Numbered from the whole stretch's first letter, positions 21,768 through 36,574 are shown. The stretch is DNA of 55,480 nucleotides, filler included, from Platydemus manokwari (GCA_037951405.1; 5 parts of 5 records of this genome joined end to end with filler, not necessarily neighbours in it), one strand, 5' to 3'. Numbers and translations are program-made. Notes: generated by a model not told the origin, from the sequence alone.

Positions 21768-22087
21768 CTGCCCCAAAGGGAGGGAGAGGGGCCCCCTACC
21801 TGCTATTTTAATGGGAGCTTTTTTAAAGCCAATCCTCCATCTCTCCCCCTTTTACCGGCGGCCACGCAAAGGGGTATAGGTTTTTATTAAAGGGTACAGC
21901 CGCGAGAAAAAGGGGAGAGATGGAGACCCACCTTGACAGGGATAATTACAACTTAGTGGGAGCCCTTCAAAAGATTTCAGAAAAATCTGCCCCAAAAATC
22001 TACTTAATTAAGAATTAAATATAACTTAAAATATTCAATTTTTTCAAATTAAAAGTTAACTATAAAAATATTAATATTTCTACTATA
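21768..22087. promoter_or_regulatory. Mitochondrial major non-coding/control region, left part
   Basis: Non-coding sequence next to trnY. It has a GC-rich repeat unit with a long hairpin (21835-21925) followed by an AT-rich tract. Confidence 0.8.
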
Positions 22088-22147
22088 CTTCTCAAGGATA
22101 TACCAACTAAGGGTTTACAACCCTCCGCTTTACTTAAGCTATTAAAA
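22088..22147 (-). tRNA. trnY: mt tRNA-Tyr (GTA)
   Basis: Anticodon arm GAGGG-TTGTAAA-CCCTT. Confidence 0.85.
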
Positions 22148-22204
22148 TAACACACACAAGGTTTTAGGGTTCCACATACCCTTAGATTATATATCTTATA
22201 TGTT
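22148..22204 (-). tRNA. trnH: mt tRNA-His (GTG)
   Basis: Anticodon arm AGGGT-ATGTGGA-ACCCT; acceptor AACATAT/GTGTGTT. Confidence 0.85.
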
Positions 22205-22263
22205 ATTAATCCATTTGGTCTTTTTACGTGGAAAGTAATTGTACTATTTTATACTAATTAAAA
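22203..22263 (-). tRNA. trnG: mt tRNA-Gly (TCC)
   Basis: Anticodon arm TTAC-TTTCCAC-GTAA. Confidence 0.85.
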
Positions 22264-22934
22264 TATATATTAAGGTACACATCTGTGGGTACAACTTCTA
22301 CAACAATAGGTATAAAAGCATGATTTGCCCCACAAATTTCGGAACATTGCCCATAAAATACCCCCAACTGTTTAGGGTTAATAGCAGCTCTATTTAAACG
22401 CCCAGGCACAGAGTCCATCTTTACCCCTATTGAAGGAAGAGCTCAAGAGTGAATAACATCAGAAGACGTTCTCAAAACAAGTGAATCAACATCATAAGGT
22501 AAGACCGCCCGCTTGTCTACTTCAAGTAAACGAAACTCCCCTGGGTTTAATCTACCCTCAGGAGTTATATAACTATCAAACGGAATATTACTAAGAGCAG
22601 GTGACTCATAACTTCAGTATCATTGCTTCCCAATTACTTTAAGAATATTATGACCAGTGAGGGGATGTTCGTCAAGTAAATATAAAAGCCGTAAACTAGG
22701 CAACGCCAAAATAACAAGAAGAAAAGCCGGAAGAACTGTTCATATAATTTCTAATGTTTGCGCTTCATGAACCCTTCGAGTCGAAAATTTAGAAAAAAGT
22801 AAAAGAAAACCTATCAAGCTAACTAATGTAAAAATACCCAAAATAATTATTAATGCGTGATCATGAAATAAAATTATCTCCGCTTGAATTAATCTTGAAG
22901 GATCCATCAAGTTAAATTGCCCTCATGTTCTCAT
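22254..22934 (-). CDS. cox2: Cytochrome c oxidase subunit II (code 5)
   Basis: [12 protein letters not shown]...FHDHA...[15 protein letters not shown]. The TAG lies inside trnG, so the real stop is probably incomplete. Confidence 0.97.
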
Positions 22935-22993
22935 TTACTTCGATATATATCTTTGCCCCTTCAAGGCAAGGCTTTAACTTAAGCTACAAAGTA
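22935..22993 (-). tRNA. trnF: mt tRNA-Phe (GAA)
   Basis: Anticodon arm TTGCC-TTGAAGG-GGCAA. Confidence 0.88.
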
Positions 22994-23053
22994 ATTAGCA
23001 ACATAAATGATCTTGAATTTTGCAAATTCACATTTTACTTAAACTATAGCTAA
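22994..23053 (-). tRNA. trnC: mt tRNA-Cys (GCA)
   Basis: Anticodon arm TGAAT-TTGCAAA-ATTCA. Confidence 0.88.
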
Positions 23054-23111
23054 TTACCGCACGACGCAACATCACCTTGACAAGGTAGCATTTTTATTAA
23101 ACTAGATAAAA
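23052..23111 (-). tRNA. trnD: mt tRNA-Asp (GTC)
   Basis: Anticodon arm TACC-TTGTCAA-GGTG. Confidence 0.85.
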
Positions 23112-24223
23112 TATTTTACCAATGAACCCCAAAGAACATTTCTAAGTACCACTATTACAGGAAGAAGAAAATAAAACACAGTTAATGTAGGAGCAAGGCT
23201 CACAAACGGTTCTTCAACAGGACATGCACCTAATCATGTAAGAAGCACAAAAGTAACTACATACTGCCAGAAAAACAACTGCCCTAATGGAGAAAATGCA
23301 CTTGGTATACTTTTAAATTTAAGGGCCAAAGGAAATAAGTATAAATACAATACAGCACCAGCAAGAGCAAGTACTCCACCAAGTTTTGAAGGAATAGAAC
23401 GTAAAATTGCGTAAGCGAACAAAAAATATCACTCAGGTTGAATATGAATAGGTGTGACTATTGGGTTTGCTTCTATAAAGTTTTCAGGATCAGTGAACAA
23501 ATTGGGGAAGAAAAATACAACCGTAAATAATATAAGACTTAAAAGAACTACACCAACAATATCCTTAATAGTAAAATATGGGTGAAAGGGAATTTTTGAA
23601 ATATGATTTACAGAACCAAGGGGATTTGTGGAACCTTTTTCATGAAGAAAAACTAAATGAAGAACAGCAAGCCCCCTTAGAACAAAGGGGAGAAGAAAAT
23701 GAAATGAATAAAAACGATTTAAAGTTGGTTGACCTACAGAAAATCCACCTCAAACCCAATTTACTAAATCCCCTCCTAAATAAGGAATTGCACTTAAAAG
23801 ATTAGTAATAACTGTTGCCCCTCAAAATGATATTTGACCTCAAGGTAAAACATATCCTAAAAATGCTGTAGCTATACTAATTAAATAAATTGTTACCCCA
23901 ACTATTCATGTTCGTGGCTGTACTAAATATCTTTGATAGTAAATTCCTCGTCCAATATGTCCATATATCAAAAGGAAAAAAAATGACGCCCCATTCGCAT
24001 GTAAAACTCGCAAGAACCACCCTCCAGGCACGTCCCGCATAATATGAACAATTGAATTAAAGGTATTAAATATATCTGCAGTATAATGTAATGATAAAAG
24101 AAAACCAGTTACAAGTTGTAATGCTAATATAAACCCTAACAAAGACCCTATGTTTCATCAAGCAGAAATATTTACGGGACTTGCTAAACCTAATAACCCC
24201 TCAAGTTCACGAAATTTTTTCAA
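23102..24223 (-). CDS. cob: Cytochrome b
   Basis: TTG start (inferred). SPVNISAWWNMGSLLG...HANGASFFF...[17 protein letters not shown]. Continuous in code 5. Confidence 0.97.
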
Positions 24224-24512
24224 ATATAATTGACCTAACCTTATCAGAACCAGCCAAACGACGAATTGATATTAAAAGTCTTAACCCAATAGCTGCCCCT
24301 GCAGCAGAAAAGCAAAGGAAGATTGTAAAATACGTATATGAAACACTCAAAGAGGAAAAATAAGGCATGAAACTCAAAATAACAAAAAATATCATTACTT
24401 CAAGACTAATTAAATTTGATAATAAATATATTTGCCGCCGAAATAAAAACCTTACAAGAAACAATAGTAAAACCAATAAACATCTTCTTATTAAGTATTG
24501 GTTTAGAATCAT
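24224..24512 (-). CDS. nad4L: NADH dehydrogenase subunit 4L
   Basis: Hydrophobic 96 aa with LISLE and AGAAIGLSLL. Incomplete T stop abuts cob. Confidence 0.9.
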
Positions 24513-25402
24513 TGTACTATTTGAGATAAAGCTAAAAACCCTATTCTAATGGGAAGAAGAGATGTTCAACATAAACTTATTAATTTATCATAACGTTGCC
24601 GAGGGTAAATCCCTCGAATAAACAGAAAAAAAATAGAAATTAATCAACCATAAAATGCAAGCCTTAAAGGTGTTGAAGGCCCAAAATAGCAAATCCCTCT
24701 AATAACACTTAAAAATAAAATCGCTGTATACTCTCCAAGAAATAAAAATGCAAAAGGACCCCCCCCATACTCAATATTAAAGCCAGACACTAATTCCGAT
24801 TCTCCTTCTGCAAAATCAAAAGGTGCCCGATTAGTTTCCGCAAGACAGACAACTAATCAACAAAACCCTGAAAAAAATATTAAATAAATAATTGGGGGGC
24901 CTCTAAGAAATTGTACTAACTCGCTCCTAGGCCGTAATATGCATGGAAAAAGGATTAAAAAAACTAAACAAATTTCATATCTAATTGACTGAGCTCTAGC
25001 GCGTATTCTCCCTAAAAAAGCATAAACAGAATTTGATGCTCACCCCGCCCCTATCAAAATATAGACATTTAATGCCCTAATAGAAATGAAAATAAGAACA
25101 CCCAACGTAACATTTCTTAATGAATTATGACTTGGAAGAAGCCCTCAACTAAATAAACCTAATCCAAGTCCACAAAGGGGTAATACCAAAAACGGAATAA
25201 CATTCCCACGGTAAGGCCTAATTAACTCTTTCAAAAATAATTTTAAAGCATCCGCAAATGGTTGAAGAATCCCTAAATAACCAACTTTATTAGGTCCTTT
25301 CCGTCTCTGAAGATAAGAAAGAACTTTACGCTCTACAAGAGTTATAAAAGCAACACCAATTAAAACACATAAGAATGTAAAAATAGCTTTTACAAGAGTC
25401 AT
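24503..25402 (-). CDS. nad1: NADH dehydrogenase subunit 1
   Basis: [23 protein letters not shown]...QPFADALKL...[24 protein letters not shown]. Confidence 0.97.
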
Positions 25403-27066
25403 AAAATAAACACGATAAAAAGAAGAATAAAATACTGCTGTATGTAACCAAACCTAATCTTTTGTCAATTTAATAACCCAAATTGGTTCACATTCGAGCC
25501 ATTTCAATTATAAAGATAAGAATAAGGTTCGAATCAATACCCCTCTAACTCTTTAGCTCCCTTGTTAAAAGTATAACTCAACCTAGGTAGACCTTGTCAA
25601 AACGGAACTATATAAAATATATTATAAACAAATAAAGATCCTTTACCTTTTTTAGAAGCCCCCAAAAAAACCCCAAATACTATGAGAATATATAATAAAA
25701 TATCTAGTTTAGGTCTATAAAAATTAAAATCAATTAAAGCTTGATTTATGACTTTTAAAAAACTTCCTAAAAAAACCCTCCCTAAGTATAATAGTATTAT
25801 TGGTACCCAATATGGAAAATTCCTCTGAAAAGCCATTGCTTTCAAGGGGGCTCCCCTTCTCCTTTGTCAATTCAATAATATCAATAACCGTACTATATAA
25901 GCACTCGAAAATACTAAAGAGATTATTAAAATAATAAAAGGAAAAATATTTACTTTACTTGTGAATAAACACCCTAAAATTGCATGTTTTGAATAATAAG
26001 CGCTTAAAAAAGGAAAGCCTATAAGACATAAACTACTAATATTAAGGAAAATTAAGCCTAAAGGCTGACGTTGCAAGGTTCCCCCTAAAAGACGAAGATC
26101 TTGGACCCCGAAACTTTGCATTAAAATATAACCTCCCGCGAGGAATAATAAAGCTTTAAAAAGAGCATGTATATAAAGATGAAATAAAGCAAGTCTTGTT
26201 GCTCCTAAACCTAATCTGAAAACCATTAATCCTAACTGTCTTAAAGTTGAATAAGCAATAACTTTCTTGAGGTCATTCTCAAAAAAAGCACAAACCCCTC
26301 CAACAAAAGAAGTTACGCAACCAAGTAAAAGCAACACCCCCAACACACTACTATTAAATTTACATCTCTCCCTAAAACGAATTAGCAAATAAATACCCGC
26401 TGTAACCAAAGTTGATGAGTGAACCAACGCACTTACAGGAGTTGGGGCAGCTATAGCAGCAGGTAACCAAGGAGAAAACGGATACTGAGCCCTTTTAGTA
26501 ATTGCAGCTACCATAATTACAGCAAAAAATATTGGTGGTAAAGATGTATTTAAAATTAAAAAAAATCTCCCCATAGCCAAAAAATAAATAACCGACCCTA
26601 TAATTAATACATCCCCAAGACGATTAATTAACAATGTTAAAAACCCAGCCCCAAGGCTACTCCCTCTTTGATAGTAAATAATAAGTAAAAAGGATGTAAT
26701 ACCTAACCCATCTCAACCTAGCATTAACACTAAAACCGACCCAGAGAAGATTAGTAAGTTTATAGAAATTACAAATAACAAAAGTAGTCAACTAAAACGC
26801 CAAAAATAAGGATCATCTTTTATATACCAACGGCTAAACATAAACACACAACCAGATACACCAAGAACAAGAGCCCTAAAAGATACTCTTAAATTATCAA
26901 AGATAAACCTTGCAGAAAATTCGACTGTGGAAATTTGACACAAATTATATCTTAGTATAAACCTTATAAAACCCCCTCTTAAAAATATTTGAGCCACTGA
27001 TGCCATAAAAACCCTTGAAACCAATAGTAGAACAGATATCCGTTGCTTATGTATTTGTTGCGTCAT
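25390..27066 (-). CDS. nad5: NADH dehydrogenase subunit 5
   Basis: [40 protein letters not shown] and [15 protein letters not shown] motifs. Open to TAA in code 5. Confidence 0.96.
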
Positions 27067-27523
27067 TTTTTAAAACAGAAACTCCACCCCTAAGTAAAGA
27101 GTAAAGGAATAAAAAAATAAGAAGTAATATAACCCCTATTACATCAACTATAAAAAAATCTATAGATAGAGGCCCCTTAGGACCTCATCTAATACTTCAG
27201 GAAGAAATATTAACAAAAATAAACCTTACAATAAGACAACAAAGAACAGATAGACCCCCTACAAAAATCCCAACACCTTGGAAAATATAATTTCTTGAAA
27301 TAATTACAGCATAAATAAACATCACTAAAATCCCCCCAGCATAAATTAAAAAAAGTAAAAGAGATATTAAACCATCATAAATTATATACCCTGAATAAAT
27401 TAACCCCAATAATAACCCAATGAGGGGTAATAATAAACTCCCTGCACTGCGAGCTAAAAGCATTCCCCCAATAAATATTAAAACATTAAATACTAAGAAA
27501 AACTCAAGTAATAAATAACCCAA
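27047..27523 (-). CDS. nad6: NADH dehydrogenase subunit 6
   Basis: LLLFLIYAGGILVMFIYA motif; lies between trnA and nad5. Confidence 0.92.
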
Positions 27524-27583
27524 TGAAGTTAAGGATTCTACTTCCTAATTGCAGATTAGGCCTTCTAATTAAAGTATAACTTC
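27524..27583 (-). tRNA. trnA: mt tRNA-Ala (TGC)
   Basis: Anticodon arm CCTAA-TCTGCAA-TTAGG; acceptor GAAGTTA/TAACTTC. Confidence 0.85.
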
Positions 27584-27584
27584 C

Positions 27585-27648
27585 TTTAAAAGTTGCACGC
27601 AAACCTTCAACTCCCAAAGTTGATATATCAATATGATACTGCTTTTAA
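27585..27648 (-). tRNA. trnP: mt tRNA-Pro (TGG)
   Basis: Anticodon arm TCAAC-TTTGGGA-GTTGA; acceptor TTAAAAG/CTTTTAA. Confidence 0.88.
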
Positions 27649-27706
27649 TAGTTAACTTACGTTATCTGCTAATCCTAAGTCAGCCGCATATTTTTGCTAA
27701 ACTAAA
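27646..27706 (-). tRNA. trnL1: mt tRNA-Leu(CUN) (TAG)
   Basis: Anticodon loop CTTAGGA in a GCTGA/TTAGC stem. Confidence 0.85.
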
Positions 27707-28700
27707 ATACAATGATAGTGGAGTAAGTCCTTTCGTACAATACACCAAAAATTTAAAGATAGAAACTGACCTGGCTTACGCCGGTCTGAACTCAGATCAT
27801 GTAGGGAAATAACGCTCGAACAGAGCACAAATCAACACCTTCTGGGTTAGATTACCCTAATCCAACATCGAGGTCACAAACTAATTTTTAATTATGCTGT
27901 TATCCCTTGAGTAATTTAATTTTCCGTCATATAAGTGCCCCATCAATAAAGTAGGTTATATGCTACTCTGTCGCCCCAACAAAAATTTATATCTTAAAAT
28001 TTCAAGGGTCTTCTCGTCTATTATTTTAAATAGAGGAATTTTCACCTCTTAAGTAAATTTTGAATATTTAACTGATACAGTGCTTCCCCAATTATTCATT
28101 CATACTAGACCTCAATTAAAAGCCAAATGATTATGCTACCTTTGCACAGTCAAAGTACTGCGGCTATTTAAATCTCATTGAGCAGAAAGCGCCATAAATT
28201 AATCCTTATGGTTATGTTTTTGATAAACAGCTGAGAAAACAATTGCCGAGTTCATTAATTAAACCTTTATTTCTTACTAATTGGTACATTATTTATAGGT
28301 ATAAAAATTCAACCATCACTCATTAGTTAAAATAATACTGGTAGGTTAGTATTTCTACTTATCAGCTAATGATTATTAAACCTTACGCCTTATTTCACAA
28401 TTTCAAAAATATTTAAAGCCTAATCACTTTAAATCTAGTCTCGTACTTAATACCTTTCACGAGTATCAAGATATCATAAGTTTTGAGAAGCCTTTCACCC
28501 CTAATTTTTGATTGACAGTATATTATGCAACATATACCTGAAAGCCTAACAACCTACAAAAATTAACTCAACTTATTTCGTGTAATTATATTTATATTTG
28601 TTTAATACCACCATTATGCAAAAGGTAATATATATATATTTACTCCTCAAAACAATTACTTTATTCTACGAAGCACCACTATTATTAATTTATCTGAACT
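27707..28700 (-). rRNA. rrnL: Mitochondrial large-subunit (16S) rRNA; 5' boundary uncertain (28700-28956)
   Basis: Universal 16Sbr-type site CCGGTCTGAACTCAGATCATGT at 27781, 16Sar-type site at ~28214-28232, and the TACCTTTTGCATAATGG motif at 28611-28627. Confidence 0.93.
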
Positions 28701-28956
28701 CAAATATAATAAATCACTTAATTGATATCACCAATTTGAGGAAAATTATTCCTATAATGACATTCTAAGTCTATGATTAAATTAATGATGTCATAAAAAT
28801 TTACCTCCTATATAAAAACCGATTAACGTACAAATAATATAGTATAAAAAATAGTAATTTTTTTATAGTAGGTTAAAAACAACTTATCGCCTGCAAAACT
28901 CGATAGTAAGGGTATTTTACACCTATTCTTCCGGATGGTAAGGAGGGAAAACATGA

Positions 28957-29012
28957 CTAAGCACAATTATGATTTTCCTGGTGTAAGCAGGCCGAATTTA
29001 ATTATTCTATAC

Positions 29013-29015
<3 letters not shown>
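28957..29015 (-). tRNA. trnV: mt tRNA-Val (TAC)
   Basis: Anticodon arm CCTG-CTTACAC-CAGG; acceptor TAAGTAT/GTGCTTA. Confidence 0.85.
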
Positions 29016-30545
<1,530 letters not shown>

Positions 30546-30551
<6 letters not shown>

Positions 30552-30603
30552 AGGTTATCCCGTAATTGGAGTAAAAATCCAACGCTTACTCAGCCATAAA
30601 AAA
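30546..30603 (-). tRNA. trnK: mt tRNA-Lys (TTT)
   Basis: Anticodon arm TTGGA-TTTTTAC-TCCAA. The 3' acceptor overlaps the cox1 start. Confidence 0.82.
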
Positions 30604-31524
30604 TTATATAAACACTACTAACAACCTTAATATATTTAAAACAAAAAGAATTACCGTCCCAAGGAAATTAAATTCCCTCTTTTTTTGAGATATATATAAC
30701 CAAAAAGCAAATTTTAAATAATAAAGCAATCTAAAAACAGAACTTCCTAGAGCAACCACAATAATTCCGGCTGGTACTGTAGAATCTAATATTCCTGAGA
30801 CAACTATCAATTTACCTAGAAAAACAGAAAATGGCGGTAATCCAGCAAGACTATATAATATTAATCACCTAGGAAATTGCCTTGGATAATTTAATGATAA
30901 AATTAAAAGAAATAAGCTTAATGAATAAACCAATAAATATTTAAATGAATCTCAAGATATAATAGCTAAAATAAATCAACCTGAATGGGTAATTGAAGAA
31001 GCTCCTAATATTCCTCGGACAGATATACAACCCTGCCCAACTAAGGCCCCTGTAATTAGTGACCCTAAGGAAAAAATAACAAAAATCCTACCAATTATAC
31101 TCCTCCATCTCCTCACATAAAAGCTTTGCATCAACCCTAAGGGGAGAATTTTAAGAGGCCTATTCATAAGAATTAAAGGTAAATATGGTAGTGATATATT
31201 TACGGGAATCACCCAGAAATGAAAAGGGAAAACCCCTAACTTTATCCTGAATCCTAATATAATAATACTTATATAAACTACTCTCCCTTCTATGTTATTA
31301 ATAATCGACAACGCCGCAAGAAAAAGTATTAATCTACCAATTGATTGGACAAAAAAATATTTAATTGTACATATGCTTGAACTTAATCTAACATAATTTG
31401 CTGTAATAAAAATAAAGCAGAATATTCTTCATTCTATTGCAAAAATAATTGATAACCAATTTCTTCTAATTAATCCAAAAAAAATACCTATCATTATTAA
31501 TATTACTTGTCTAATACTCCTCAT
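30604..31524 (-). CDS. nad2: NADH dehydrogenase subunit 2
   Basis: KYFFVQS, KLGVFPFHFW, SSITHSGW and SLAGLPPFSVF motifs; ATG to TAA, 307 codons. Confidence 0.95.
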
Positions 31525-31585
31525 AATGGGGCAGGATTACCTAAATATATTGACATCAACAATACCCGTCAACCGGCGGCCCCAC
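31525..31585 (-). tRNA. trnI: mt tRNA-Ile (GAT)
   Basis: Anticodon arm TATTG-TTGATGT-CAATA; acceptor GTGGGGC/GCCCCAT. Confidence 0.9.
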
Positions 31586-31628
31586 TTTAGTACTTTAAAA
31601 TACCTATATTTTAAAATTATTTACTTTT
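31586..31628. promoter_or_regulatory. AT-rich spacer between divergent trnI and cox3 (putative origin/promoter)
   Basis: 43-nt AT-rich gap with a TTTTAAAATA...TATTTTAAAA inverted repeat. This is where pulmonate mitogenomes usually have a candidate origin. Confidence 0.5.
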
Positions 31629-32406
31629 ATGCGACGAACCCCGTTCCATTTAGTCGAATTTAGACCCTGACCCTTAATTGGATCTATTGGAATTTTCTGT
31701 ATCCCCATTGGTTTTGTTTTATTTACCCGCTATAATACCCCTTTAATATTATACTTCGGAATTTTACTAACAACAATCGTTTCCTATGCATGATGACGAG
31801 ATATTGTACGTGAAAGAACATATCAAGGACATCATACATCTTACGTTGTAAAAGGTCTCAAAATTGGTGTGGCTCTATTTATTGTATCCGAAGTTTGTTT
31901 CTTCTTTTCCTTTTTCTGAGCTTACTTTCATAGAAGCCTCTCCCCTTCAATTGAAATTGGGGGTATATGACCTCCATTAGGAGTCACTCCTCTTGAGACT
32001 TTTTCAATTCCTCTACTTAACACAAGAGTCCTCCTCCTTTCCGGAGTTAGAGTTACTTGGGCCCACCACGCGATTGAAGAAGGTAAGTTTAATGATGCTA
32101 GTTGAGGGTTATTAATAACTGTTCTTCTTGGAGTTTATTTCTTATTCCTTCAATATGGGGAATACCAAGACACCTCGTTCACTATAGCAGATAGTGTATA
32201 TGGAAGAACTTTTTTCATCGCCACGGGATTTCATGGACTTCATGTCCTTGTAGGCGCAACTTTCTTATTTGTATGTTGAATTCGTTTCTTAAAATACCAC
32301 TTTAGTAAAAATCACCATGTAGGCTTTCTCGCAGCAGCTTGATATTGACACTTTGTAGATGTCGTTTGATTATTTTTATATGTAAGCATTTACTGATGAG
32401 GTTCCT
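31629..32406 (+). CDS. cox3: Cytochrome c oxidase subunit III
   Basis: [15 protein letters not shown]...ATGFHGLHV...AAWYWHFVDVVWLFLY; incomplete T stop. Confidence 0.97.
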
Positions 32407-32466
32407 ATGAGTATAGCTTAATTAAAGCAAGGGTTTTGTAAACCTTAGATGGCATCCCTACTCATA
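32407..32466 (+). tRNA. trnT: mt tRNA-Thr (TGT)
   Basis: Acceptor ATGAGTA/TACTCAT; anticodon loop TTTGTAA. Confidence 0.88.
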
Positions 32467-32469
32467 TAC

Positions 32470-33787
32470 AGTTTACTGTATAGTTACTAAATAAATTTAG
32501 CTTCAAAATTAAAATTAAAGGTAAGACATGACCAACAAGAGTTAATATATAAGAATGTCTAATATTTTTACCCCTTAAAAGGTATTTTCCAAAAGCCCCA
32601 TGATTTACTATAGCATACAAATATATATTATATGCTACTCCTATAAACATAATAGATATTGTAACTACTAAAAATCCTACCCTAAAAAATCACGCACCAG
32701 GAATAATAAATAATTCCCCTACAAAATTAATAGAGGGAGGGGCGGCCATGTTAATGATACAAACTACAAATCAAAAAAAACTTACTCTTGGGTAAACAAC
32801 TAATAAGCCTTTTGTTAATGTAAATCTTCGCCTGCCAGTGTATGTATAAGTAATGTATGATAATAAAAAAAGAGCTGAAGATGCTCAACCATGAGCTAAT
32901 ATAGTGACTAATGCCCTCACACTCCCTCAACTAGTACCTGACATTAAGCCCACAACTACTAACCTTATATGAACAATACTCCTATAAGCAATTATCGCTT
33001 TAATATCATCCTGCCCAAGACAAATCAATGCTGCAAAAAAACCACCCCATAATCTAACACTTACTAAAACAACTCATGAAAGTCTCGTGAGGGAATACCT
33101 TAACAAAGCACTATATAAATAAACTCCATACCCACCTAACTTAAGGAGAATACCAGCCAAGATTATTGACCCTCCAACAGGAGCTTCAACATGAGCTTTT
33201 GGAAGTCAAACATGAACCCCAAAAATAGGAAGCTTAACAATAAAAGCAATAAACCCTAGAATTATTAGTCAACTTGAAGACCTAGTGCCAAACTGAGTCA
33301 ATTGGTATAAACTTGCCCTCCCAGTATTGTTTATGATATAAACAATTGTAACTAAAAGGGGTATAGATCCAGCAACTGTATATAAAATTATATATAAACC
33401 TGCTTGTAAACGCTCTTGTTGATAGCCTCAAGAAAGAATTAATGCTAAAATTGGCAACAATCTACTCTCAAACCTAATATAAAAAAGCAGCAAGTTCCTG
33501 CTTAGAAAACATAAGACAACAATAACAAGAAGAACTTGATTTAATAAATTATAGCTAATTTCCCGATGTTTTCCTGTTCTAATTATAATAAGAAACACAA
33601 GGGTAAGTCTTATTAAAACTAATAAAGAATTAAAATCATTTTTGCATATTAAAAGATCCTCATAATATATCCTTTGCTTATTTAATCAAGCAACTCCCCC
33701 TAATACCCTAAATCTTAATACGGAAATAATTTGACTAAATTTTGGATTAATTAAGCCCAACACTAAACAATAAAAAACTCTAATCAT
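32470..33787 (-). CDS. nad4: NADH dehydrogenase subunit 4 (3' end approximate, incomplete stop)
   Basis: [40 protein letters not shown] and [13 protein letters not shown] motifs. Confidence 0.95.
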
Positions 33788-33839
33788 AAAGAAGAGGAAA
33801 CACTCCCTCGCCGCAGTTAGCAGCCGCAACTATCTTCTT
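33788..33839 (-). tRNA. trnS1: mt tRNA-Ser(AGN) (GCT), D-armless
   Basis: Acceptor AAGAAGA/TCTTCTT; loop CTGCTAA. Confidence 0.85.
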
Positions 33840-33912
33840 AAATTAAGAAAAATTTTTTTAAAAATGATATTACTTTACTAAATAAGTGGACGACTAACCA
33901 TAGGCATAGAAT

Positions 33913-33961
33913 TATACATAATTAGATTTTGAAAGTCTTACAAGGAAGTATCCATGTATAT
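33913..33961 (+). tRNA. trnS2: mt tRNA-Ser(UCN) (TGA), D-armless
   Basis: Acceptor TATACAT/ATGTATA; loop TTTGAAA. Confidence 0.78.
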
Positions 33962-34305
33962 ATGTTAACGTATTTTCTGACGGCCCTTTTTCTATGCTTT
34001 TTATTATTTTGTCTAAGTATATTAACAAAAATATCCCCAAGACCTTCTAACAAAGGAAAATTCTCCCCATTTGAATGTGGATTTGAACCTTTAAACTCTA
34101 TGCGCCGCCCTTTCAGCGTCCGCTATTTTATTTTAGTTGTATTATTCTTGATTTTTGACGTCGAAACAGTACTTCTAATGCCCTGTCTTGTTAATATTGT
34201 TACTATTGGTGACCTAAATGTACCTATTTATATGTTGGCTTTCCTTGTCCTCCTTATTTGGGGTTTACTATTAGAATGAAAAAACGGCATTTTTGAGTGA
34301 AAATA
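33962..34305 (+). CDS. nad3: NADH dehydrogenase subunit 3
   Basis: [11 protein letters not shown]...[18 protein letters not shown]; incomplete TA stop before trnM. Confidence 0.95.
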
Positions 34306-34366
34306 CCTTGGATAAGCTATTTAAGCTATTGGGCTCATAACCCAAATATGGTGAAACCTCCAAGGA
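34306..34366 (+). tRNA. trnM: mt tRNA-Met (CAT)
   Basis: Anticodon arm TTGGG-CTCATAA-CCCAA; acceptor CCTTGGA/TCCAAGG. Confidence 0.92.
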
Positions 34367-35042
34367 GGTTAATTATGGCCACAATTTCCTCAAGTTCGGA
34401 TAACTATGGTAATTTATGTGACCTACCAGTTAAGAGAATTTATAAGATCCGAAAGGATGCCTAAACCTTCTTGTTAATGTGATTAATAAAGTGCCAGCAA
34501 TCGCGGTTAAACTTTAGCAAACGGAAATCGGGAAGTGTCAATTAAAAAATGCCTGATTGAGGTGGTGAAATACTCATTCTAAATTAACCATAATTTAATA
34601 TTCAGAATATTGGAAAAAAACGGGGATTAGATACCCCCTTATTCAATACACAATATTGTGCACGGAGGACTAAAACCAAATGGTTAAAACTTAAATAATA
34701 TGGCGGCAATGGTGATATTCAGGGGAGCTTACAATTGAATTGACAACCACCAAGGTAAATCAACTTCTGTTAATATCATGTATACCGTCGTTTAGTTAGT
34801 ATTTAATATACTATCATAAAACTAAATAACAGATCAAGGTGCAGACAATACAGAAGATATTGCGAGCTACAATAGTAAATTTATCCAAATTTGTACTTGT
34901 AAAGACACTGAAGGAGGACTTGAAAGTAAGGGTTAAAATTTTTAAAGCCTAAATTAAACCACCATTGTGCACAAATCGCCCGTCACTCTTGGGTTAACTT
35001 AAGATAAGTCGTAACAAAGTAGGTGTAGTGGAAACTGCCCCT
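34367..35042 (+). rRNA. rrnS: Mitochondrial small-subunit (12S) rRNA
   Basis: GTGCCAGCA, GGATTAGATACCC, GCACAAATCGCCCGTCAC and AAGTCGTAACAAAGTA motifs. Confidence 0.95.
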
Positions 35043-35102
35043 GTTTAAATAGTATAAATATTACATTACCACTTCACGGTAAAAATGACCTGTCTTTAAA
35101 TG
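35043..35102 (+). tRNA. trnE: mt tRNA-Glu (TTC)
   Basis: Anticodon arm TTACC-ACTTCAC-GGTAA. Confidence 0.85.
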
Positions 35103-35160
35103 TTAAAATAGCAACAGCACTTAAGTTTCGGCCTTAAGTTTGGTGATTCACCTTTTAATA
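35102..35160 (+). tRNA. trnR: mt tRNA-Arg (TCG)
   Basis: Anticodon arm TTAAG-TTTCGGC-CTTAA. Confidence 0.85.
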
Positions 35161-35812
35161 ATGTTAACAGACTTATTTTCAAGTCTTGATGGGGCCCGTA
35201 GAGTTTTCTTTTGACTCCCCCCTTTAGTTTTTATTTTAACCCAAAGAAGAAATAATTACTGACACTCAAGCTCTAAAGATATTTTAACGCATAGAATTTT
35301 AAATACGTGAATTTCTCCTCAAAGGGGCCGAAAATTCACTTTCTACACTTTCGTCGTCAGGTTATTCTATTTCCTCCTTCTAATAAATCTTGGAGGGTTA
35401 ACACCTTATACTTATACACCAACAAGAAATCTTCTGACTGTTGCAGGATGTGGTTTAACTTCATGGTTAGTATTAATTTTATCTGGTTATTCATTCTCAC
35501 TTAAAATATCTTTGGCTCATTTAGCCCCTGCAGGAGCTCCCTCAATCTTGTTGCCTTTCTTAATTATTATTGAATCAATTAGCCTTTTAATCCGCCCCTT
35601 AACCTTAACCGTCCGCCTAATCGCAAACATTAGTGCAGGCCATATTGTTCTAGGATTAATTGCTAATACATTAAGAAGATTAACCCATAGAAGCTATCTA
35701 GTTCTCGTTCTTCCTATTTACATCTTTTACACTCTTTTTGAATTCTTCGTAGCTGTTATCCAAGCATACATTTTTACACTTTTAATTACCCTTTATCAAT
35801 CAGAACACCCAT
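35161..35812 (+). CDS. atp6: ATP synthase F0 subunit 6
   Basis: MLTDLFSSLDG...AHLAPAGAP...IRPLTLTVRLIANISAGH...VIQAYIF; incomplete T stop. Confidence 0.97.
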
Positions 35813-35867
35813 GTAAATTTAGCTTATTTAAAGCACCTAACTGTTAATTAGAAGAACGATATTTACT
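35813..35867 (+). tRNA. trnN: mt tRNA-Asn (GTT), apparently T-armless
   Basis: Loop CTGTTAA in a CTAA/TTAG stem; only ~7 nt between the anticodon stem and the 3' acceptor strand. Confidence 0.82.
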
Positions 35868-36054
35868 ATGCCACAGCTTAGCCCCCACAGGGCCCTCTTT
35901 CTTTATGTAGTACTATTACTTATCTTAACTTTAATTATAATTAATTTATTTCAACCAATTAGAAATAAGATTACGCCTAATCGAATTCGCCGCAATAGAA
36001 TTCGCCGCAATAGAATTCGCTACAATTGAAAAAAAGACAAATTTCCATTTAAAT
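35868..36054 (+). CDS. atp8: ATP synthase F0 subunit 8
   Basis: MPQLSP start, a hydrophobic helix and a basic tail; 62 codons plus an incomplete T before trnL2. Confidence 0.92.
35979..36026 (+). repeat. In-frame 15-bp tandem repeat (x3) inside atp8
   Basis: AATCGAATTCGCCGC AATAGAATTCGCCGC AATAGAATTCGCTAC AAT. Confidence 0.95.
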
Positions 36055-36116
36055 TTAATAGTGGCAGAAATATGCGTGGATTTTAAGCGTCCAAGATAAG
36101 ATATTCTTCTATTTCC
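36055..36116 (+). tRNA. trnL2: mt tRNA-Leu(UUR) (TAA)
   Basis: Anticodon arm TGGAT-TTTAAGC-GTCCA. Confidence 0.82.
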
Positions 36117-36172
36117 TATTAGGTGTTAGGCACGAAAAAATTTGAGTTTTTAGGAGATTTAATCAATAGGAT
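36114..36172 (+). tRNA. trnQ: mt tRNA-Gln (TTG)
   Basis: Acceptor TCCTATT/AATAGGA; loop ATTTGAG. Confidence 0.82.
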
Positions 36173-36230
36173 AGGCTTGTAAGTTAAGAAAACTATTAAC
36201 CTTCAAAGTTAAAAATGGTATCCGGGCTTA
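36173..36230 (+). tRNA. trnW: mt tRNA-Trp (TCA), on the atp8/trnQ strand
   Basis: Anticodon arm TTAAC-CTTCAAA-GTTAA. Confidence 0.85.
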
Positions 36231-36574
36231 AGTAAGCAAATATGCTTAAAATCTTATACTTTATTATTAAAATATATACTAATAGAAAATAAAACCTTCT
36301 TATTTATAGGGATAATTACAACTTAGTGGGAGCCCTTCAAAAGATTTCAGAAAAACCTGCCCCAAAGGGAGGGAGAGGGGCCCCCTACCTGCTATTTTAA
36401 TGGGAGCTTTTTTAAAGCCAATCCTCCATCTCTCCCCCTTTTACCGGCGGCCACGCAAAGGGGTATAGGTTTTTATTAAAGGGTACAGCCGCGAGAAAAA
36501 GGGGAGAGATGGAGACCCACCTTGACAGGGATAATTACAACTTAGTGGGAGCCCTTCAAAAGATTTCAGAAAAA
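36231..36574. repeat. Control region, right part, with 219-bp periodic repeat and circular overlap
   Basis: AGGGATAATTACAAC... recurs at 36308 and 36527 (period 219). 36357-36574 is identical to 21768-21985. Confidence 0.9.

Follow-up and report, generated by a model that had tools for sequence, protein, structure and literature searches.

A complete land-snail mitogenome of helicoid affinity, probably a low-abundance passenger in the sample in which it was sequenced

The contig at positions 21768-36574 of the window (the whole stretch of DNA analysed here, 55,480 nucleotides long with filler) spans 14,807 bp without any N, has a G+C content of 31-37% and a steady strand skew, and carries the 37 genes of an animal mitochondrial genome (mitogenome), i.e., 13 protein genes, two ribosomal RNAs (rRNAs) and 22 transfer RNAs (tRNAs), spread over both strands. 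We consider it very likely that this is the complete, functional and circular mitogenome of a land snail of the superfamily Helicoidea, present as a low-abundance passenger and not as the mitochondrion of the dominant organism in the sample. The genes, their order and the genetic code are treated first, followed by the non-coding region, the placement of the snail and the route by which its DNA may have entered the data.

Gene content, genetic code and gene order

A set of 37 genes is far beyond chance. Under invertebrate mitochondrial code 5, 13 long open frames were found on the two strands, and Pfam searches of stop-free pieces recognized cox1, cob, nad5, nad1, atp6, nad2, cox2, cox3 and nad3, with a weak match for nad4L, through the families COX1, cytochrome b, COX2, COX3, ATP-synt_A, NADHdh, Oxidored_q4 and Proton_antipo_M. 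The identity of nad4 and nad6 comes from tblastn against a related mitogenome in Logan, L001 (1-13971; also L002-L005), a complete 13,941-bp circle of a helicoid-like snail in runs of 2025 (SRR33145341 and SRR33155388/391/393/398), for which a literature search on the SRR numbers returned no paper. ARAGORN detected 19 tRNAs in its default metazoan-mitochondrial mode and none in bacterial mode. A relaxed threshold gave hundreds of false tRNAs, and only candidates in empty syntenic slots were accepted: trnD, trnG and trnK, all with mismatched acceptor stems, occupy the slots cob/trnC, cox2/trnH and cox1/nad2, respectively, as in L001. Rfam matched the small rRNA at 34362-35051 and trnT, while rrnL, assigned to the stretch that separates trnL1 from trnV, aligns with the rrnL of L001. 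The annotation is further supported by the start codons of nad6, nad4, nad3 and atp8, which directly adjoin the end of the upstream tRNA. Since the frames of cox3, atp6, atp8 and nad3 overlap the downstream tRNA, and that of nad4L overlaps cob, these five genes probably end on incomplete stops. When the contig was compared with itself by BLAST no gene was duplicated, and the non-coding repeat alone recurred.

All protein genes contain in-frame TGA codons (2-12 each, one in atp8) as well as AGA/AGG codons. In the conserved cox1 motif FVMIFFMVMP all three methionines are written ATA, as are those of AHHM and AATM; the lysines of NHKD and GIKVF, the second of which we take to be the K-pathway lysine, are AAA, and the tryptophan of GGFGNW is TGA. 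When cox1 was aligned with mammalian COX1 sequences of the PDB, 'ahhi' in the table-11 translation lay over AHHM, its reading of the FVMIFFMVMP site lay over that motif, and both AAA lysines fell on conserved lysines. When atp6 was aligned with 37 named gastropod sequences, the TGA columns held tryptophan in 86 of 111 cells and the AGA columns most often serine, with a weak signal for AGG, which is represented by two codons only. Methionine at ATA and lysine at AAA point to code 5 and not to the flatworm code 9, and the placement of these codons indicates that the contig uses code 5 (TGA = Trp, ATA = Met, AGR = Ser, AAA = Lys). A rhabditophoran mitogenome, with ATA = Ile, AAA = Asn and its genes on one strand, is ruled out by the codon placement and by the presence of genes on both strands. 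The contig also carries atp8, a gene that flatworm mitogenomes usually lack.

Along the cox1 strand, the genes follow the order cox1-V-rrnL-L1-P-A-nad6-nad5-nad1-nad4L-cob-D-C-F-cox2-G-H-Y and then the non-coding region; onward and on the opposite strand lie W-Q-L2-atp8-N-atp6-R-E-rrnS-M-nad3-S2, followed by S1-nad4, by T-cox3 on the opposite strand and by I-nad2-K. From its arrangement this order is stylommatophoran. The contig has the (Y,W)/(G,H) transposition that Minton et al. (2016; PMC5096375) reported in Camaena plus Bradybaenidae and in Praticolella, a polygyrid, and it shares with these snails the block cox2-trnG-trnH-trnY-trnW, the position of trnS1-nad4 before trnT-cox3 and the block L1-P-A-nad6-nad5. 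A transposition of tRNA-Ser plus nad4 and tRNA-Thr plus cox3 occurs elsewhere in Helicoidea (PMC5096375) and is not found in the contig. L001 is collinear with the contig over its full length, and in both the trnQ-trnW pair faces trnY-trnH-trnG-cox2 on the other strand. The sequence-only reading had described a whole animal mitogenome with 37 intact genes on both strands, and the searches of open frames together with Pfam, tblastn, ARAGORN and Rfam agree with it. The same holds for several of its details: ATA at conserved methionines and AAA at the lysine of HKD, confirmed by the cox1 codons and the PDB alignments; a TTG start of cox1, which is the first possible start of that frame; an atp8 beginning MPQL, whose ATG CCx lies directly 3' of trnN; and a pulmonate gene order, which matches published stylommatophoran orders. 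Its statement that this is not a flatworm mitochondrion likewise stands, given code 5, the genes on both strands and the stylommatophoran order. The coordinates of all features are collected in Table 1.

Table 1. Features of the mitochondrial contig, in positions of the window
Feature	Position	Strand	Evidence and remarks
Non-coding region, head	21768-22088		Holds the ~219-bp GC-rich unit; 21768-21985 identical to 36357-36574
trnY, trnH, trnG	22089-22147, 22145-22207, 22202-22263	-	ARAGORN; order as in L001
cox2	22254-22934	-	ATG..TAG, 226 aa; Pfam, tblastn
trnF, trnC, trnD	22934-23111	-	ARAGORN (trnD at relaxed threshold)
cob	23102-24244	-	ATA..TAG, 380 aa; Pfam
nad4L open frame	24066-24512	-	Incomplete stop probable, close to the cob start
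nad1	24503-25402	-	ATG..TAA, 299 aa; Pfam
nad5	25390-27066	-	ATG..TAA, 558 aa; Pfam
nad6	27047-27523	-	TTG start adjoining trnA; tblastn
trnA, trnP, trnL1(uag)	27524-27707	-	ARAGORN
rrnL interval	27708-28954	-	1,247 bp, ~250 bp longer than that of L001
trnV	28955-29016	-	ARAGORN
cox1	29013-30551	-	TTG..TAA, 512 aa; Pfam, PDB alignments
trnK	30535-30605	-	Weak acceptor stem; ARAGORN at relaxed threshold, syntenic with L001
nad2	30604-31524	-	ATG..TAA, 306 aa; Pfam
trnI	31524-31586	-	ARAGORN
cox3	31629-32441	+	Frame enters trnT; incomplete stop probable at ~32405
trnT	32406-32467	+	Rfam, ARAGORN
nad4	32405-33787	-	ATG adjoining trnS1, TAG stop, 460 aa; tblastn
trnS1(gcu)	33788-33839	-	ARAGORN
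trnS2(uga)	33913-33961	+	ARAGORN
nad3	33962-34315	+	ATG adjoining trnS2, 117 aa; Pfam
trnM	34306-34366	+	ARAGORN
rrnS	34367-35042	+	Rfam small-subunit rRNA match 34362-35051
trnE, trnR	35043-35161	+	ARAGORN
atp6	35161-35847	+	Pfam, trees
trnN	35813-35867	+	ARAGORN
atp8	35868-36086	+	MPQL start; 15-bp tandem repeat inside
trnL2(uaa), trnQ, trnW	36056-36231	+	ARAGORN; strand and order as in L001
Non-coding region, tail	36232-36574		59-bp repeat copy 36308-36366 (partner 21938-21996); 36357-36574 duplicates the head

Three features of single genes were noted beside the annotation. The rrnL interval compares with 994 bp in L001, and its extra ~260 bp (28631-28954), at the trnV end and with 26% G+C, showed no similarity to L001 or to the remaining genome; this sequence could represent either a variable 5' domain of the rRNA or another non-coding region. 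The atp8 frame, at 72 amino acids, is long for this gene, and part of its length is contributed by an in-frame 15-bp tandem repeat, AATAGAATTCGCCGC, present in 2.8 copies at 35979-36020 and encoding RIRRN-SIRRN-SIRYN. Finally, trnW (36172-36231) shares its strand with trnQ, trnL2 and atp8 and lies opposite to trnY, trnH and trnG, as it does in L001.

The non-coding region and the length of the molecule

The first 218 bp of the contig exactly equal its last 218 bp, giving a circle of 14,589 bp as assembled, in which trnW and trnY are separated by a non-coding region of 446 bp. This region consists of an AT-rich part, a 59-bp element, 160 bp at 49% G+C, the 59-bp element again and a second AT-rich part; the two 59-bp copies match at 48 of 49 positions over the part compared. 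The repeat thus laid out has a period of 219 bp and 49% G+C, contains runs such as GGGGCCCCC, and spans 36308-36574 and 21768-21996. The 218-bp terminal overlap falls inside this 219-bp unit and is consequently also an overlap between repeats. A 63-residue open frame within the repeat (21827-22015, + strand) gave no Pfam match and was taken as a chance frame and not as a gene.

In the public run in which the contig was found (X1, see below), the sequence from 36326 on is broken into unitigs of 60-152 bp with depths of 291, 623 and 402, as compared to 18.7-20 elsewhere, so that the k-mer depth of the repeat is 15-30 times that of the remaining mitogenome. The simplest reading of this difference is a collapsed tandem array: the assembler has probably folded a series of 219-bp units, for which we infer a copy number of ~15-30, and the true molecule is probably several kb longer than the assembled one. 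Alternatively, the unit could be present at high copy also elsewhere in the sample. L001 has no large non-coding region, unlike the contig, and where the contig holds at least 446 bp with a repeat between trnY and trnW it has 3 bp.

Taxonomic placement of the snail

The sequence-only reading had attributed the contig to a land snail, and the protein comparisons lead to the same group with a narrower placement. The best named atp6 matches were Satsuma myomphala, Aegista, Cornu, Fruticicola and Camaena, with 56-68% local identity. A quick atp6 tree of 66 sequences put the contig within a Helicoidea clade (support of 96 in the Shimodaira-Hasegawa-like approximate likelihood ratio test, SH-aLRT) and sister to Satsuma (97), and in a more careful tree of 41 sequences the contig and Satsuma myomphala were again sisters (99/96). 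The nad3 search returned mostly helicoids as top matches, at 50-58% identity and with Euglandina among them. Full-length protein searches covered atp6 and nad3, and the Satsuma nad3 was outside the candidates of the word search.

Satsuma myomphala, the sister and best named match in atp6, is a land snail of the same superfamily (Camaenidae sensu lato, Helicoidea). The two atp6 proteins are 60% identical over 217 columns, and the path between them amounts to 1.21 changes per site, values that make the contig a distant ally of Satsuma and not a congener. The divergence exceeds that among camaenid genera in the tree, suggesting that the two do not belong to the same genus and perhaps not to the same subfamily. 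The distance to L001 varies widely among genes, with cox1 at 90.6% identity in protein and 79.5% in DNA, nad2 at 43% and atp6 at 58%. No close mitogenome relative was present in the protein collection searched, where the best identities were 60-68% for atp6 and 50-58% for nad3 and from which the proteins of the contig itself were absent; judged from these two proteins, the contig probably represents a helicoid land-snail lineage with no close mitogenome in that collection. The suggestion that the mitogenome could be unreported is to this extent sustained, within a scope of proteins only.

Depth in the sample and origin of the contig

Words of cox1 were found in a single indexed public run (X1, of 2024), all others sharing at most 6% of them. 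The contigs of X1 were compared with positions 30575-36574 (6 kb), a stretch outside cox1. Two of them, with depths of 20 and 18.7, account for 30575-36327 and do not differ from it at any position. Others match 32337-32383 only, with two differences, and together with their loose ends read in the cox3 frame, at a summed depth of ~2,731, a figure that comes from two short contigs over 47 bases and, like Logan depths in general, reflects k-mer abundances of short unitigs. The flank of the deep cox3 reads HVSFEIT, as opposed to HVGFLAA...VSIYWWGS in both the contig and L001, and with such different flanks it must belong to another animal, more than 100 times deeper; presumably it is the mitochondrion of the main organism of the run. 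A further X1 contig of 3,732 bp, at 47x, aligns in five collinear pieces (32312-34311) with the same spacing and ~85% identity, spanning cox3, nad4, nad3 and the start of rrnS, and by this likeness represents a second mitogenome of stylommatophoran type in X1, deeper than that of the contig. No contig of the run is longer than 17,126 bp. Over 30575-36574 there was no match from X8 and X9, two runs that share 5% of the cox1 words.

At ~20x against ~2,700x, the snail mitogenome is a minor, non-target component of the X1 sample. The sequence-only reading had called for a comparison of depth, and the unitig depths separate the contig from a different and far deeper cox3. With respect to a second mitogenome, which that reading had proposed to look for in code 9, X1 yielded the different cox3 at ~2,731x and the 47x snail-like contig. 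In the reading that we favor, the assembler closed a low-abundance snail mitogenome into one contig; its gene order is of the type seen in Camaenidae, Bradybaenidae and Polygyridae, with Satsuma as the nearest relative sampled, and the 14,589-bp circle probably under-represents the ~219-bp tandem array between trnW and trnY.

Several observations weigh against parts of this reading. For a genome skim of the snail itself, 20x would be an ordinary mitochondrial depth, and the contrasting figure of ~2,731x has the narrow basis given above. For the completeness of the gene set, trnD, trnG and trnK were seen with the relaxed threshold only. As to the placement, Helicoidea in the more careful atp6 tree dissolves into a polytomy with Oreohelix, Euglandina and the Cerion group, and the link to Satsuma comes from a single gene, which evolves fast and has long branches here (0.57 and 0.64).

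As to how snail DNA came into the sample, ingestion by a snail-eating animal appears the likeliest route, a tentative preference that we put somewhat short of an even chance. The two snail mitogenomes stand at ~0.7% and ~1.7% of the dominant depth, and prey and index bleed fit these values about equally. Cross-contamination in the laboratory or by index hopping, from snail libraries sequenced together with X1, is the strongest of the other explanations and nonetheless an unlikely one: both proportions are typical of the range of index bleed, yet no other indexed public run contains the cox1 sequence (best other share 0.06), and a co-sequenced snail library would be expected, though not necessarily, to be public.

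Somewhat less probable still is that the snail was the host of a parasitic flatworm or another parasite whose larval stages were sequenced from snail tissue. Land snails, among them helicoids, serve many digeneans as first hosts, and the snail is a minor component here. This explanation is met by the second, divergent snail-like mitogenome in X1, as one host individual is one snail, and by the share of host mitochondrial DNA, which in dissected larval stages is usually well above 1%, neither point being decisive.

The contig could also be the own mitogenome of the assembled organism, if the assembly were that of a helicoid snail and its flanks had been misjudged. The mitogenome is complete, intact and circular, it occurs in a single run, and a large snail genome skimmed at low coverage could give 20x. 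In a library the mitochondrion of the animal itself normally has the greatest depth, and in X1 a different cox3 is more than 100 times deeper (~2,731) and is accompanied by the 47x snail-like contig, which leaves this explanation improbable. A nuclear copy of mitochondrial DNA or a horizontal transfer, for which no supporting point was found, can be practically dismissed, because code 5 alone keeps the 13 frames open, the genes and tRNAs show no damage, the two ends of the contig overlap, and no X1 contig of perfect identity runs into foreign sequence within the 6 kb compared.

For curation, it follows from the passenger reading that the contig should carry a non-target flag in the assembly and should not pass for the organism's mitochondrion. 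Malacologists could use it as a complete mitogenome for a helicoid lineage without close coverage in the protein collection searched. If the target is a predator, the contig also names a lineage of prey, which is of ecological use, and the 47x mitogenome could name another. A more specific version, which we regard as possible and rather doubtful, is that the contig records a diet: the animal sequenced would be a flatworm that feeds on snails and had two or more species of land snail in its gut. One of these would belong to a Satsuma-allied helicoid lineage with no published mitogenome, and its mitochondrion would carry a multi-kilobase array of ~15-30 units.

One more stylommatophoran mitogenome obtained as by-catch would not surprise a specialist, and what is known of mitochondria and of prey DNA in shotgun data is left unchanged, prey DNA in land-flatworm data having already been published. 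In shotgun data of the land flatworm Amaga expatria, gastropod DNA was interpreted as a record of prey (PMC7659627); there, as here, the snail DNA was a contaminant in the shotgun library of another animal. The present case differs from that of A. expatria in that a whole snail mitogenome was closed and that at least two mitogenomes of snail type are present.

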